Shown here piece by piece: positions 6,843 to 32,606 of a stretch of DNA of 40,449 nt (its first letter is position 1; every line of letters starts with the position of its first letter). The position numbers and the translations under genes were made by a program. The stretch lies in the sequence record NC_010155.1; one strand, written 5' to 3'. The notes beneath the pieces were generated by a model. That model had not been told where the DNA came from and searched no databases. It was given only the letters and a program-made list of their open reading frames with translations.

Positions 6843-7172
6843 TTATTGAATTTCGAATAACCAAAGTTCATAGCCTATTTTTTCTAGCTCTTCTGTTGTT
6901 TTCACTACGACACCTTCAGGAAGGCGTTGCTTTAGCATAAATGCTAGGATTCTGTCTCCATGTGTCACTTTGATTTGGACTCTGTTCATTGGTACGTTAA
7001 CTCCTAAGATGCTCGACAAGAGTTCTGCTGTCGCTTGGTGACCGATGGCAGACGTGAATTGTTCTTTGGTCACTAGTTCTTTCGCTTCTTGGATAGTTAT
7101 TTCTTTTGCCTTGACAGTATACTCCTCCCCCGGTTTTAAGGGGAGGATTGCGGAATTCAAAATATACAGCAT
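6843..7172 (-). CDS. acrIII-1: DUF1874-family viral ring nuclease (anti-CRISPR against type III cA4 signalling), 109 aa
   Basis: SAIGH45, NR64, R83LPE86G correspond to the catalytic/binding residues (H47, R66, R85, E88) of the SIRV1 gp29/STIV B116 family. Confidence 0.92.
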   Translation of the reverse strand: MLYILNSAILPLKPGEEYTVKAKEITIQEAKELVTKEQFTSAIGHQATAELLSSILGVNVPMNRVQIKVTHGDRILAFMLKQRLPEGVVVKTTEELEKIGYELWLFEIQ

Positions 7173-7210: not shown

Positions 7211-7280
7211 TTAAGCCATGTCTTCATTTGTTCCTAATAATTTATTAAAGATAAAGGGATATGTTGTCTGGTGGGCTGGC

Positions 7281-7676
7281 GTGAAGAAAAGTAGAAAAGG
7301 ATTAAGTAATGCAGTTTCTGCCCTAATACTTGTAGTAGCTTCAGTAATAATAGCACTGATAGTTGTTGGATTTGCTTTCGGATTAATTGGTGCTTTTACT
7401 GCACAACCGGTAATACATGTAGTATATGCATACGTGCAAAATCATCATCTGTATGTTGTGTTACAGAATACTGGTAATGTGCCAGCTATGATAGTTGCTT
7501 ATATAATAGATGGTGAGGGACCTAATTCTACGAATATTCAAGTTCCTGTCGGAACGGTAACTATATCTATACCTCTACCGTCAAGTTTATCGCTCTCCTC
7601 TGGTCAGTTTGTAGACTTTACTTTGATTATTAGTAATGGGGAGGTTATACCAGGCGTAGCAACGGTAGAATGCTGA
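7281..7676 (+). CDS. Archaeal type IV pilin (class III signal peptide, Aap/DUF973-like), 131 aa
   Basis: GTG start after GGTGGG SD; KKSRKG/LSNAVSALILVVASVIIALIVVGFAFGL is a basic leader, prepilin cleavage site and hydrophobic N-helix. Confidence 0.85.
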   Translation: MKKSRKGLSNAVSALILVVASVIIALIVVGFAFGLIGAFTAQPVIHVVYAYVQNHHLYVVLQNTGNVPAMIVAYIIDGEGPNSTNIQVPVGTVTISIPLPSSLSLSSGQFVDFTLIISNGEVIPGVATVEC

Positions 7677-7747
7677 TTTTTTAAATTTATGCAATTTTTC
7701 TTTATGAAGAGAAGAAGGGAAGAATAAAAAAAGAGGTTGATTTTCAA

Positions 7748-8431
7748 TCAATCTGCTTTCTTAACGGGTGGGTGAACTAGTAAATAGATTCCTGGACCTA
7801 GTGTTATGGGATCATGATCGTTACTCTTGATGTCTAATCTACTGTCAACTCTTACTAATGTGCCATCCTTTGCATGTGCTAACTTTACTACTCCTTCAGT
7901 ATAGTGGTTGTAAATTTCTAACGGATAATCATAAAATTCAATGTAATCAGGCACTTCGACTTCATGGATCTCTAGATGCCCTTGCGTGAGTATTGGGGTT
8001 GATTGTATTGTTTTCACCTTGTGCGCAATATATACTTTAACTCCATAATTATCGAACTCAACCAAGTATTTCCTTGGGCTTAGGTGTTTTAGAAAATCCT
8101 TGTAGGTTTGTAAGAATATCTCTGTGAATGTTAATTTGTCTCTGGTGAACTTAAAGTCCGCCTCAAGTGTCATTTTTTTCCAGTCCATGATCCACAGTCC
8201 TCTTACTGGTTTTGCATTAATTTCTCCGTTGTTCTCGACTTCCACTTGATAGCATCCTTTCACTGTCATTCCAGAGTTGCTTATGTACCATGCACAGTCG
8301 GTGACGTTTCTGTCATATCCAGTTACTACGATTTTATATATCCAGTTACCTGACTTCAACTGTATTGCTGGGGGTTCAGGTAGATTCGGGAGTTTCAATT
8401 TTTTACTTGATTCTTGATTTTGAGTTTCCAT
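7748..8431 (-). CDS. 227-aa protein with C-terminal QGx...(H)xxH...G-x-Y...AD domain
   Basis: Start moved to METQNQ (AGGGG SD, TATA near 8467-8474). C-terminal TQGHL...KDGTLVRV...SNDHDPITLGPGIY...KKAD*. Confidence 0.8.
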   Translation of the reverse strand: METQNQESSKKLKLPNLPEPPAIQLKSGNWIYKIVVTGYDRNVTDCAWYISNSGMTVKGCYQVEVENNGEINAKPVRGLWIMDWKKMTLEADFKFTRDKLTFTEIFLQTYKDFLKHLSPRKYLVEFDNYGVKVYIAHKVKTIQSTPILTQGHLEIHEVEVPDYIEFYDYPLEIYNHYTEGVVKLAHAKDGTLVRVDSRLDIKSNDHDPITLGPGIYLLVHPPVKKAD

Positions 8432-8609
8432 ACTATCCCCTCTACCTAAATAGTTGGTAAAAAAGCTATATAAACATTTCTCTCTGTCTTTTCTGTTAAT
8501 GAAGATATTTACATAAGCCAATTAAAGTTAGTTTCAGTAGATTTTAAAGAAGAAATAATAATGCAAAAAGTAAAAAAATGAAATAAAAAAATAACTTATC
8601 TTAAATTTA

Positions 8610-28556: not shown

Positions 28557-31500
28557 TCATTGTGAGATGTGCAACGTTCTTGCATCGAAAAGCCACTGTG
28601 CATATTGCCCACCAGTAGCTCCAGCTACTGCTAGATAATAAGTACCACTAGATGGAGCAGAGAAATCACTACCTAGAGAAGTACAACCAGTAACGAATTG
28701 ATTATTAGGTATAAAGAACATTGTATAGCACACTTCATTTGACGATGGAATATAACTCACTATGTAAAACATCTCATCACCAGATTGTACATTAGTATTA
28801 AACGTCCCACTTCCAGCACCACACACAATCTCAGTAACAGATGTACCATTAACAACAGAGATATTCACTCCTGTACCTACTTGATTTCCAGCACATGGTT
28901 CAGCCCAGTATGGATCATATTGAACTAATATAGTTGGACTTGAGGTTTCAGGAATTGACATACTTCCTTGAAATTTACAACCAGAAATTGAGGGAGCAAC
29001 AATATTAGATGTATTAAATCCACTCGAGAATATTGCAAAAGCAAAACCATCAGCAGGACACGAAGATGGATTAGACGGCATAAACAAACCACTAACTGTA
29101 AAGACGTTACCTTGCGTGTATGAGTAAGAGAATATAATACCACCATATTGTCCAGTAGTTGGCGAAGTGAGAGTATCCATAAGTGAACTATACGTGTTAT
29201 AAAGAACAAACGTAGTCCTAGCATCACTATAAAAAGCATCAATATATGGTCCAACTCCAACATACAGCGGAAGTGATGGAGTAGATATATTATAGTAAGT
29301 TAATGAATCATCGGCAGTTGATAAATCAGGAGGTCCATTCCATGGAGTCCACCATCCAACAAGATTATCAGAAAAGAGTAAGGGATCAATTGAATATGGA
29401 CCCATTTGATATATTTCTTGAATTTGTGACGCCGATAAGGCAGTATTAAACACTGCAACCCACGCAATATCACCATTGAAATATCCTGATGAACCCTCAC
29501 GTGACCAACATCCATATCCTATCCATAAGTAATAAGGATAAGGAGGTAGAAGACCACTAGATTCAGTAACAGAACCAATTTCCTGTCCATCTACGTAAAG
29601 AGTTATAGAATTATTAGAAGGATTAAGTACAACAACTGCAAGATGCCAATTTCCATCGTTATACGTACCAGACGTAGTTATACCTGTACCAGGACAACAG
29701 TAGCTAGTAGATAATTGACCATTAACAATTTGAAGTATATTATCAAAATATTCATAACATGTAGTCGTAGCACTTTGTTCATCGTAAAGTATTACACCAT
29801 TACCAGAAGTAGTTCTAAACCACACCGCATAAGTTACGGGAAAATTAAACGTATGGCTAGATGAAGCAACTTGAGGTAATTCAACCACCATATATGAATT
29901 TACACCATTAAACTCCCAGTAACTATTATCAATGTAACCAGATTGCGAAGCAGGAAATGGAGGAGCAATCATTGGATAAACTCTAGCGAAATGGTAAGTG
30001 AGAGTCAAATTACCAGTTGCATCACTATACGCAGTGCCAAGATACATGTAAACGTTACCAGAAATAGACTGATTCGGCAAACTACTAACTAACGTCACTC
30101 TATTAACAACTAGGGAAACATTATTATTCTGGTAAAATAAACCACTAATGAGCTTCCTAAATGGATAATTAATACCAATAACAGCATAAGTTGCATAACT
30201 AGTCTCACAGAACGAAGAGGACGAAGAAGGACATGATGATGGACATGTCAAGGATTGCGTACCTAATTCAACAACGTAATATGGAACACAATTACCATTA
30301 ATACTAAAATCTGCAGTCTCTTGAGGAGATGAAGATGAAATTACACCATCAGTAAAAGCATATTCTGCCCCATTCCCAACACTAATTGACGGCTGAGCAG
30401 TTCTAATGTTAGTTATAAAATTAGACGTAGAAGACATTACTTCAAACATGTAACCCTCTCCAAAGGTTTGCTTAGATTGCAAAACAACGTAACCAGTCTG
30501 CCCTTGACTAACGTTAATAATCAGATCATTATTAACTTCATAAGAGTAATCGCCACTCACGTATAGATTCCATATATCCGTGTTAAGACTAGTACCACAG
30601 AAATTGTCATAAAGAGTAAATATCTTACTCCCATTATCATTACTACAACCAGCAATTTCCTTATATGCACCAGCAACTCCATCGTAAACAAAACTTGAAT
30701 CACCAACCCATACATCAATCTGAATTACAGTAGAAAGATCAGTAGGAAGTACAACCCACATGAGCGCACTACCACCAACTATCTCCTCAACCCACGTATA
30801 CATTTCGGCACCATTATACGACAGCCTAACATTAGAGTAAGTTGAATTAGCACCATCAACATATATCCAAATTGGAATTGGGTAACCAGATGGGATAGTA
30901 GTACTAGTATTATTGAAAAGATAAATCGTGTAACTAGTAGTATAACATTGATACTTTGCATCGGCAAAAGGACAACTTATAAAAGTACCGGAAAGAATAG
31001 TCTCAAAATTAGTAGTAGATTCTGGAGACACAACAGCAGTAATTTGTTGATAAACTGAAGAAACCATAATACTCTCACTTTGAGAGGAAGAAATGGGGAA
31101 CTGGGTAGGAGTAACTTTCTCCTGAACGTAAGAGACCATAGTTGTCTCACTCTGCGCAGTCTTTAAACTCGTCACAACTTCTTTAACAGTCTCATATATC
31201 ACGGAATTTAGGAACTCCTCACTAGCGGAAGTGGAAATTGGAACTAGTGCCTTTTGAACTACTTCATAAACTGTAGAAATAAGGAATTCCTCACTAGCAG
31301 AAACAGAAACGGACTTAAGAACTTCAGTAACAACAGAATACGCAATCATTTCAATTATTGGTTTAATAGCACTCGTATACTCTGACACTAACTCTGGCGT
31401 AATAGTACGTATCATGTCTGCAACTAAGAGAATCTGAGATACTGAAGTAGGAACGGACTGTATGACAATCGTAGGCTTAATGAATTTTATTTGTAGAATT

Positions 31501-32606
31501 GGAATTGAGGATACAGTAACTTCACTTTCTTGAACGAGTTTAACTATAGGTTGGAAATATGCACTTACAGAAATGGAGGATGCAGTAACGTATTCCGAGA
31601 ATACTTGTTTCGAAACAGGATAAGAAAAGTAAACTGTTTGAATACTCCTACTAGCAGTAACGCTCTCAACTTCTCTTATGAGAGTAACAGGGTAAATGAA
31701 ATTCACATCCAACACGGGCAAAGTAGTAGTAACAACGTAATACAAGGTAAAGGAAACACTTTCTTCAACAGTTTCAGTCTCTGTCATATGAGAAGGAGCT
31801 TCCTTAATGGAAAGCAAATCACTGGGCAACACGTACTCATTCTGAGGCACTTGTTGAACTACACCAGTAGGCGTTTCTTGATAATCATAAACAGCATCAG
31901 TAGGATCCACGATATCTATTCCCAACATGTAATAACAAATACAACCGGGACATACTTCGGGACATGGTTTAGATACAACTAATATGTTTGGAGGAGTAAT
32001 AGTAGTAGGTGGTGGTGGAGGAGGTGGAGGTGGAATGGAAGTTGGTGGAACTGAAGTGGGATAAGTCACTTGAAAGGAAATAGGAGGAGGGGGAGTAATG
32101 TAACTAAATGTGGAAACTGTAGTGGGAGGAAGTGTAGACGGTATAATAACAACTGAACCCTCATTTACAAACCAAAGTTCCTCACTTGCAGTAACTCCGG
32201 GAGGAACGCAAAAACCAGTAGGAGAAGAACAAGGTTGCCCAATATCATTAGCTTGAACATTCTCATAGTATGTGTACTTTTTAACTGGATAGTTTTGAGG
32301 AAAAACCAAATCCCTAACAGTAACTTGCTCCTTTCCTCGAAGAGTTTCAAGATGTGCAGGAAACATTTGCATTTGATCAAATACTGGAATATATTCAGTG
32401 CCAATCATACTCACAGCACTAGCAACAAGTATAGTAACGTGATCCTTCGCCTCAGCAATGTAATGAGCTAAAGCACATTGAATACAACAATCATAAAACT
32501 GTTCAAAAGTAGGCTGGTTTATGCATTGTTGAAAACACTCAACATCACTACATTCCCAATTAGGAGTAGGAGTACAAGATGCATTAGGTAACTCTCCACA
32601 AGACAT
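28557..32606 (-). CDS. Giant modular adhesin/terminal fibre, 1349 aa (Cys-rich head, Pro linker, S/V/E repeats, DUF2341-like, LamG, L-type lectin-like)
   Basis: LamG: WEFNGVNSY...AVWFRT...DGNWHL...LYVDG...FNGDIAWVAVFNTALS. Lectin-like: ADGFAFAIF...VQYDPY. DUF2341-like: YTWVEE...WVVLP...IFTLYDNF. Confidence 0.85.
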   Translation of the reverse strand: MSCGELPNASCTPTPNWECSDVECFQQCINQPTFEQFYDCCIQCALAHYIAEAKDHVTILVASAVSMIGTEYIPVFDQMQMFPAHLETLRGKEQVTVRDLVFPQNYPVKKYTYYENVQANDIGQPCSSPTGFCVPPGVTASEELWFVNEGSVVIIPSTLPPTTVSTFSYITPPPPISFQVTYPTSVPPTSIPPPPPPPPPTTITPPNILVVSKPCPEVCPGCICYYMLGIDIVDPTDAVYDYQETPTGVVQQVPQNEYVLPSDLLSIKEAPSHMTETETVEESVSFTLYYVVTTTLPVLDVNFIYPVTLIREVESVTASRSIQTVYFSYPVSKQVFSEYVTASSISVSAYFQPIVKLVQESEVTVSSIPILQIKFIKPTIVIQSVPTSVSQILLVADMIRTITPELVSEYTSAIKPIIEMIAYSVVTEVLKSVSVSASEEFLISTVYEVVQKALVPISTSASEEFLNSVIYETVKEVVTSLKTAQSETTMVSYVQEKVTPTQFPISSSQSESIMVSSVYQQITAVVSPESTTNFETILSGTFISCPFADAKYQCYTTSYTIYLFNNTSTTIPSGYPIPIWIYVDGANSTYSNVRLSYNGAEMYTWVEEIVGGSALMWVVLPTDLSTVIQIDVWVGDSSFVYDGVAGAYKEIAGCSNDNGSKIFTLYDNFCGTSLNTDIWNLYVSGDYSYEVNNDLIINVSQGQTGYVVLQSKQTFGEGYMFEVMSSTSNFITNIRTAQPSISVGNGAEYAFTDGVISSSSPQETADFSINGNCVPYYVVELGTQSLTCPSSCPSSSSSFCETSYATYAVIGINYPFRKLISGLFYQNNNVSLVVNRVTLVSSLPNQSISGNVYMYLGTAYSDATGNLTLTYHFARVYPMIAPPFPASQSGYIDNSYWEFNGVNSYMVVELPQVASSSHTFNFPVTYAVWFRTTSGNGVILYDEQSATTTCYEYFDNILQIVNGQLSTSYCCPGTGITTSGTYNDGNWHLAVVVLNPSNNSITLYVDGQEIGSVTESSGLLPPYPYYLWIGYGCWSREGSSGYFNGDIAWVAVFNTALSASQIQEIYQMGPYSIDPLLFSDNLVGWWTPWNGPPDLSTADDSLTYYNISTPSLPLYVGVGPYIDAFYSDARTTFVLYNTYSSLMDTLTSPTTGQYGGIIFSYSYTQGNVFTVSGLFMPSNPSSCPADGFAFAIFSSGFNTSNIVAPSISGCKFQGSMSIPETSSPTILVQYDPYWAEPCAGNQVGTGVNISVVNGTSVTEIVCGAGSGTFNTNVQSGDEMFYIVSYIPSSNEVCYTMFFIPNNQFVTGCTSLGSDFSAPSSGTYYLAVAGATGGQYAQWLFDARTLHISQ

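Follow-up and report, generated by a model that had tools for sequence, protein, structure and literature searches.

Gene gp17 of Acidianus filamentous virus 3 (AFV3; Betalipothrixvirus acidiani, Lipothrixviridae) encodes a genuine Aap-type type IV prepilin, with a resemblance to the pilins of Sulfolobales adhesive pili that goes beyond chance, and it is almost certain that the protein is a real Aap-type pilin of cellular origin. The DNA analysed here (the window, 40,449 bp) is the full length of the deposited AFV3 record (AM087120.2 / NC_010155.1), to which it is 100 % identical, with 288-bp inverted terminal repeats included. In that record the gene is named ORF152 and described as a 'hypothetical protein' at 7218-7676 on the + strand. 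The original prediction of a virus-borne Aap-like adhesive pilin at 7281-7676 had the identity right, as full-length matches to pilins in the PDB and hits to pilus folds confirm. The identification of gp17 as a pilin and the choice of GTG 7281 as its start correct the annotated function and, probably, the annotated start codon.

From the in-frame GTG at 7281 the open reading frame (ORF) encodes 131 aa, which begin with M-KKSRKG/LSNAV (the slash marks the predicted cleavage site), i.e. a leader of 7 residues followed by an uncharged hydrophobic segment of 33 residues. The pattern [KR][GA]/LS is common to all 23 aligned homologues, and the basic residue at -2 and the Gly or Ala at -1, by which class III signal peptides are recognised, are both present in gp17. 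There are 23 invariant columns in the alignment, most of which fall within the helix, and the leader KKSRK is also the N-terminus of the S. caldissimus homologue. When the whole AFV3 genome was scanned in six frames, a single class III-type site with a hydrophobic stretch was found, that of gp17. The full class III signal peptide and the N-helix resembling those of Sulfolobales AapA/B pilins, both noted earlier from the letters, are thus borne out by the cut site aligned in the 23 homologues and by the PDB pilin matches.

A phmmer search of all PDB chains gave full-length matches to 8FJS/8FK0 (1.2e-18), 8TIB/8TIF of S. islandicus REY15A (9.3e-17), 6W8X of S. solfataricus (1.4e-15) and 6NAV of S. 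islandicus LAL14/1 (7.3e-15), and a weaker match to AapB of S. acidocaldarius (8Q30, 8.7e-4). The pilins 8FJS, 8TIB, 6W8X and 6NAV build Sulfolobales adhesive pili, as determined by cryo-electron microscopy (cryo-EM), and the similarity of gp17 is thus to the Aap type. The AlphaFold2 model of gp17, computed from a 24-sequence alignment, has a mean predicted local distance difference test (pLDDT) value of 88.6 and consists of a helix at residues 6-40 and seven beta strands, which is the arrangement of an N-terminal helix of ~30 residues and a beta-sandwich head expected of a pilin. In the Foldseek comparison of this model with the PDB the top hits were 6NAV, 6W8X and 8Q30 (template modelling (TM) score ~0.7) and 8TIB (TM 0.54), with 31-40 % identity, and the next after these Sulfolobales pili were Pyrobaculum pili and archaellins.

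Family profiles were less responsive. The score of gp17 against Pfam Pilin_N (PF07790) was 12.3 bits, below the gathering cut-off of 25.2, and its cellular relative from S. caldissimus (P0004) likewise stayed below the cut-off with 15.8 bits; the Pilin_N model is therefore insensitive to the clade of gp17. Pfam DUF973 (PF06157), the C-terminal signature of the S. islandicus/Stygiolobus pilA type, matched P0010 (2.6e-13) and gave no match for gp17, for P0004 or for the metagenomic relative P0002, which places gp17, as judged from sequence profiles, in a sister subfamily of the DUF973-type pilins. Against the NCBIfam UpsA equivalog (NF046073) gp17 scored 18.8 bits, compared to a cut-off of 130, which is general pilin similarity only, and no PHROGs family matched it above threshold.

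The mature protein of 124 aa is the shortest among the 118 family members compared, in agreement with the short globular head originally described. In the same comparison the Ser and Thr content of the head, 16 %, was the second lowest (28-31 % in the closest relatives, family median 22 %), and the head has 8 charged or His residues versus a family median of 4. It contains one N-X-S/T sequon and ends with a C-terminal Cys. Position +3 is Asn in gp17 and Gly in 21 of the 23 aligned homologues. The shortest mature length, the unusual Asn at +3 and a Glu-Cys end derived from the insertion junction would suit a dominant-negative pilin, which enters the assembly platform by its helix and stalls or caps polymerisation, so that pili are lost and other viruses are excluded by removal of their receptor. 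Bacterial phages do block type IV pili against competitors, with Tip and PfsE as the examples summarised in PMC12426801. However, the head of gp17 is complete, with seven confidently modelled strands that can all be superposed on filament-forming pilins, and nothing specific predicts capping. We consider such a poisoning mechanism quite unlikely.

The gene lies in an AFV3-specific insertion (Table 1). AFV3 is closely related to AFV6, AFV7 and AFV8, for which Acidianus convivator is entered as the host in RefSeq. AFV8, AFV6 and AFV7 are syntenic with AFV3 in this region, but in them ORF109 is followed directly by the ORF227 homologue and the insertion is absent. The left junction was mapped to 7212-7220 and the right one to ~7668-7672, with a few bases' uncertainty. 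Conserved pilin coding sequence runs through GVATV, and the final Glu and Cys codons and the TGA match the AFV8 intergenic flank ATGCTGG. A scoring scan had placed the right junction at 7658, a position that was discarded since the codons for GVATV are part of the conserved pilin coding sequence. The C-terminus of gp17 is TVEC, compared to TVLS or VVSS in its relatives, and the frame is closed two codons past the junction; from this alignment the native C-terminus appears to have been replaced at the junction. The insert also includes ~60 bp upstream of the gp17 start.

The distribution of the gene also bears on whether gp17 could be a virion component, a pilin-like protein of the AFV3 terminal structures or envelope. 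Lipothrixvirions are enveloped, and the N-terminal helix of gp17 is of a membrane-anchoring kind. Yet AFV6, AFV7 and AFV8 do without the gene and keep syntenic, closely similar flanks, and the cleavage site and helix are typical of cellular filament subunits. A place in the virion seems very improbable.

Table 1 Features of the gp17 region of AFV3 (positions in the window)
Feature	Position	Strand	Basis or remarks
Prepilin coding sequence	7281..7676	+	131 aa and stop; AFV3 gp17, annotated as ORF152 from ATG 7218
Class III (type IV prepilin) signal peptide, M-KKSRKG	7281..7301	+	Predicted PibD cut after Gly7; alignment of 23 homologues
N-terminal hydrophobic alpha-helix, filament core of the mature pilin	7302..7400	+	DSSP helix residues 6-40
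Ig-like beta-sandwich head, seven strands, Ser/Thr-poor, relatively charged	7413..7667	+	AlphaFold2 model and Foldseek
AFV3-specific insertion of ~450 bp carrying the pilin gene	7212..7672		Four-genome alignment, junction scan, annotations
Putative TATA-box-like element TTTATTAA	7241..7248	+	33-40 nt upstream of GTG 7281, within the insertion
Putative Shine-Dalgarno-like box GGTGGG	7270..7275	+	6-11 nt upstream of GTG 7281
T6 tract, candidate archaeal terminator	7677..7682	+	Directly after the stop; read from the sequence
ORF109 (gp16), STIV B116-like / AcrIII-1 family, divergent left neighbour	6843..7172	-	PF08960, E 1.3e-31
ORF227 (gp18), AcrIIIB1 homologue, convergent right neighbour	7748..8431	-	PMC11065993 supplementary file 3

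The annotated start at ATG 7218 is probably 21 codons too long. It was rejected because no homologue has anything that matches the 21 extra residues, because the codon sits at the insertion junction and because the sole upstream TATA element, only 17-24 nt away, is too close. That element is shared with AFV6, AFV7 and AFV8, in which it is part of the conserved promoter of the divergent ORF109. Together with the Shine-Dalgarno-like and TATA-like boxes at GTG 7281, these observations led us to prefer the latter start. With either start, cleavage after the Gly gives the identical mature protein of 124 residues. A loose alignment was obtained between the TTTATTAA region and the promoter region of the cellular homologues. 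The same geometry of TATA and Shine-Dalgarno elements occurs at ORF227, ORF162 and ORF49, with TTTATATAG-type and GGTAGGGG-type boxes, and the expression signals of gp17 thus match those of the neighbouring anti-defence genes.

The closest relatives of gp17 are cellular pilins of Sulfolobaceae with 44-53 % identity, and the family has 448 members in Sulfolobales-type metagenomes and genomes. The metagenomic proteins P0002 and P0003 are 53 % identical to gp17, and the gene adjoining theirs is 60 % identical to one of S. tengchongensis. P0004 of S. caldissimus (48 %) and a 149-aa protein of S. tengchongensis (44 %) are encoded at a syntenic chromosomal locus, in both genomes downstream of an aldehyde oxidase-type gene and a DUF2203 gene. 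In a quick IQ-TREE maximum-likelihood tree of 126 family members, AFV3 grouped with P0002, P0003, P0004 and the S. tengchongensis protein at a Shimodaira-Hasegawa-like approximate likelihood ratio test (SH-aLRT) value of 99; the AFV3 branch was long (1.54), comparable to that of P0004 (1.48). The GC content at third codon positions (GC3) was 0.22 for gp17, 0.14-0.23 for the cellular pilin genes and 0.37-0.41 for the viral neighbours. A cellular origin is concluded from the chromosomal relatives, the supported grouping and the cell-like GC3, and the best explanation for the insertion is capture of gp17, by illegitimate recombination, from the chromosome of a member of the Sulfolobaceae, with ~60 bp of its upstream region brought along.

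No second copy of gp17 was found in the 5.8-billion-protein collection, INPHARED or IMG/VR. When gp17 was compared by tblastn with 50,697 phage and archaeal-virus records, AFV3 alone matched; the same search with P0004 found nothing, not even AFV3, owing to the low-complexity filter, and this tblastn negative is accordingly weak. A pattern scan of IMG/VR keyed to the invariant helix, which gives a stronger negative, also returned AFV3 alone. Seven loci were found in the genome-contig scan, none of them from Acidianus, the genome of Acidianus convivator, the natural host, not being among those scanned. Two pilin-bearing contigs of ~40 kb, the size of a lipothrixvirus genome, were considered as viral genomes and on inspection both were cellular.

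The single occurrence, without a second copy in these three collections, the position of gp17 in a variable region and a GC3 that is still cell-like are all compatible with a neutral passenger, i.e. a piece of a cellular gene picked up by chance not long ago and without a role for the virus, in an isolate that happened to be sequenced soon after. However, an identity of at most 53 % to known cellular pilins argues that gp17 has evolved apart for a long time or that its donor has not been sampled. Its 131 codons form an uninterrupted frame and the cleavage site is intact, like the helix, in which 27 of the 33 first mature residues are identical to those of P0002 despite 8/33 third-position differences; this is the pattern that purifying selection on a filament-core helix would produce. 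The promoter and Shine-Dalgarno geometry is like that of neighbouring viral genes, and a stop has been gained in frame just two codons after the junction. With these features, a gene without function is quite improbable.

Some observations were also made on the cellular loci. A conserved locus (L022:2785-7046 of S. tengchongensis CP146016, and L005, L007 and L023) includes an AFV3-clade pilin gene, which is followed by genes for two membrane-anchored, sequon-rich proteins (~190-234 aa), a polytopic membrane protein of 772-793 aa and an amino-acid permease. No Pfam match was obtained for the polytopic membrane protein of this locus. In L019, a 40.9-kb cellular contig (JGI 3300017482), three DUF973-type pilin genes flank a block of small ORFs including one for a ribbon-helix-helix protein, and this block may be an integrated element among pilin paralogues.

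In AFV3 the pilin gene is on the strand opposite to both of its neighbours, within a variable anti-defence island. The original prediction placed it beside an anti-CRISPR gene, and this is true on both sides, ORF109 (PF08960) being on the left and ORF227 (AcrIIIB1 homologue) on the right. The nearby ORF79b and ORF162 are the candidate anti-defence genes ADG.35 and ADG.34, and gp17 itself is absent from the same list of candidates (PMC11065993 supplementary file 3). Upstream of ORF227, ORF162 and ORF49 (of positions 8431, 9545 and 6033, respectively, all on the - strand) a common promoter and leader architecture was seen, with (A)TGTTTATATAG or TTTAAATA ~36-43 nt upstream and a GGTA(G/A)GGG box 6-17 nt before the ATG. 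It is probably the early or anti-defence regulatory motif described for AFV3 in PMC11065993. The mechanically called ORF of ORF227 (7748-8521, - strand) reaches TTG 8521 and has 257 aa, but TATA and GGTAGAGGGG precede the annotated ATG 8431 (227 aa), which supports the annotated start.

A Pfam scan of 20 of the 22 AFV3 ORFs of at least 203 aa (all but those of 207 and 227 aa) gave no T2SSE, T2SSF or Peptidase_A24 match; the matches were to helicases, a nuclease, glycosyltransferases, the major capsid protein and a lectin-like domain. At the sensitivity of Pfam and for the 20 ORFs scanned, this supports the earlier statement that no pilus ATPase or peptidase is encoded. As AFV3 is without detected assembly genes, gp17, if it acts as a pilin, must use the PibD and pilus machinery of the host. 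The lectin-like domain belongs to ORF1349 (28557-32606, - strand), a giant conserved protein with a concanavalin A-like lectin / Laminin_G_3 domain at residues 918-1063 (E 6e-15), and this domain may serve the virion termini as a glycan-binding module for recognition of a receptor.

We anticipate that the TATA-like box at 7241 would drive a transcript of gp17's own, translated from GTG 7281, and that the prepilin would insert in the membrane, where host PibD would remove the 7-residue leader after Gly7. The 124-aa mature protein would then be polymerised by the Aap ATPase and platform of the host, either mixing into host pili or forming filaments of its own. With its near-cellular core helix and its shorter, more charged head, poorer in Ser and Thr, it would give pili with a changed surface. 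The most likely selective value would be in competition between viruses, by altering a structure on which rudiviruses, fuselloviruses, STIV-like viruses and AFV1 rely to adsorb or enter. Processing and assembly of gp17 by the host machinery we hold to be somewhat probable. For the account as a whole, a captured host-derived pilin which is assembled by the host and alters the pilus surface in competition between viruses, our confidence is evenly balanced with doubt.

The purpose of gp17 is a more tentative matter, and receptor remodelling or superinfection exclusion is a possibility that we hold with less than even confidence. It is favoured here because infection of S. islandicus by many SSVs and SIRVs depends on pilA1/pilA2, which are pilins of the 6NAV family (PMC7217056), because AFV1, SIRV2 and STIV bind such filaments (PMC10791045, PMC12426801) and because the authors of the work on the haloarchaeal pleolipovirus SNJ2 propose that a virus may exclude others by putting its own pili in place of the chromosomal ones, and cite prophage FimU in Pseudomonas (PMC12426801). 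Pili of this family are heavily glycosylated (PMC11178815), and the Ser/Thr-poor head of gp17 may therefore present a different surface. It is conceivable, if doubtful, that a glycan-poor gp17 replaces or dilutes the heavily glycosylated host pilin and makes infected cells invisible to pilus-dependent competitors, i.e. rudiviruses, fuselloviruses, turriviruses and AFV1-like viruses. If true, this would be receptor substitution as a form of superinfection exclusion, encoded inside an anti-CRISPR island. For a soluble form of the decoy suggested earlier, nothing was found in support.

Several points weigh against receptor remodelling by assembled gp17. The Asn at +3 could impair assembly, and so could the junction-replaced C-terminus. 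The gene is present in one of the four AFV genomes compared, is thus dispensable, and could be a recent neutral passenger. The general statement that filamentous and rod-shaped viruses of Sulfolobales adsorb to pili is documented for AFV1 and SIRV2, but SIFV, the betalipothrixvirus that has been studied best, is reported to bind the cell surface directly and not pili (PMC10791045). In view of this, the targets of an exclusion would more likely be pilus-dependent competitors than AFV3 itself. Finally, the pili of SNJ2 serve as a receptor for SNJ1, contribute to biofilm formation and motility and help the host, an outcome other than exclusion (PMC12426801).

The last point suggests that viral pilin filaments may instead be useful, raising adhesion, biofilm formation, twitching or cell contact, or giving a co-resident virus a receptor, with benefit to a persistently infected host and to virus spread. 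The pilins of SNJ2, the sole experimentally characterised ones of an archaeal virus, work in this way (PMC12426801), and gp17 looks assembly-competent, with its conserved helix and confident fold. Interplay between viruses is also plausible given the close kinship of AFV3, AFV6, AFV7 and AFV8 and the shared Acidianus convivator host in the AFV6-8 records. On the other hand, betalipothrixviruses carry homologues of the SIFV pyramid-egress protein (PMC10791045), which indicates lytic release and leaves less time for a benefit to the host, and the genes around gp17 are those of an anti-defence island and not ones for lysogeny or maintenance. A role of this kind is rather unlikely for gp17.

Among viral proteins, gp17 may not be alone in having a pilin-like fold, as judged from predicted structures, the sequence relationship of the two other candidates being weak. 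The orf26 product of the rudivirus SMRV1 (JX944686, 20383-20775, - strand; 130 aa, UniProt K4NZB6) has a BFVD model which matches that of gp17 with E 5.5e-6 and TM 0.55. It has a basic leader, a possible RA/LA cut site, a hydrophobic helix and a head ending with LANGDKVLVAV, and its gene adjoins those for the coat protein and a glycosyltransferase. The match of orf26 to the pilin profile was weak (hhalign 54 %, over the C-terminal 27 columns only), and on the modelled structure it may represent a second, independent pilin-like gene in Ligamenvirales. In BFVD, the viral protein closest in structure to the gp17 model was A0A2Z5WQ18, of 141 aa (E 1.4e-8, 25 % identity).

Virus-encoded archaeal type IV pilins are already known, experimentally in Pleolipoviridae (2025) and as a prediction in the Asgard adnavirus BaiyanV2 (2026). 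Full-text searches gave no paper which ties AFV3, lipothrixviruses or other Sulfolobales viruses to an encoded pilin. With AFV3 the phenomenon would also include hyperthermophilic Thermoproteota and a filamentous, probably lytic virus with linear double-stranded DNA, and gp17 offers a clean case of gene capture from cell to virus with a mapped insertion site. Adhesive type IV pili are a common entry point for several unrelated Sulfolobales viruses, and a virus which carries a pilin could control access to the cell. For the Sulfolobales system there are already structures of the pili, knock-outs of the pilins and a set of viruses that depend on pili, which makes the idea of receptor substitution directly testable.

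Compared to known systems, gp17 is closest to the Aap pilins of Saccharolobus solfataricus and S. islandicus (6W8X, 8FJS, 6NAV, 8TIB; pilA1/pilA2), to which it is homologous over the full length with ~40 % identity, while AapB of S. acidocaldarius (8Q30) is 31 % identical. All have the same class III leader, a near-identical N-terminal helix and an Ig-like head. The Aap pilins are cellular and have been seen as filaments by cryo-EM, and their pili are entry factors for SIRVs and SSVs (PMC11178815, PMC7217056). In contrast, gp17 is virus-encoded, is known here from sequence and model, and has a shorter head with fewer Ser and Thr and more charged or His residues, and the Glu-Cys end. The chromosomal relatives P0004, the S. 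tengchongensis 149-aa protein and P0002/P0003 share with gp17 the post-helix motif QP/SPxI[HQ][LV]VxAY…LY…NTG and the C-terminal motif [PS]G[VT]A[TI]V, but their heads are Ser/Thr-rich (28-31 %), unlike that of gp17. In S. tengchongensis the pilin gene is followed by those for two membrane-anchored glycoproteins and the 793-aa polytopic membrane protein, at least two of which are also found on the metagenomic contigs.

Prophage FimU, Tip of D3112 and PfsE of Pf phages are functional analogues, by which a pilus is changed or blocked against competitors according to the summary given in PMC12426801; their proteins and machinery are unrelated to gp17 and the likeness is by function only. The pilins PilA1 and PilA2 of SNJ2 are secreted and assembled by PilB2/PilC2 of the host and become the dominant pili (Xiang et al. 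2025, PMC12426801), which makes assembly of gp17 into pili credible. Like SNJ2 with its host-acquired pilin genes, AFV3 has a pilin gene alone, without a detected assembly ATPase, platform or peptidase, and would rely on the secretion and assembly machinery of the host. The SNJ2 pilin 8GI2 and P0002 of the AFV3 clade are distant homologues (E 0.004). The two viruses differ in realm, family, host phylum and lifestyle, SNJ2 being a temperate provirus, and the function of the SNJ2 pilins has been demonstrated whereas that of gp17 is predicted. For BaiyanV2 a lone host-type type IV pilin gene without machinery has been predicted (2026, PMC13700489). Like AFV3 it is a filamentous virus of the realm Adnaviria with a lone pilin gene, and both cases are predictions. 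The BaiyanV2 pilin is almost identical to that of its host, which points to a very recent capture, whereas gp17 is at most 53 % identical to known cellular pilins.

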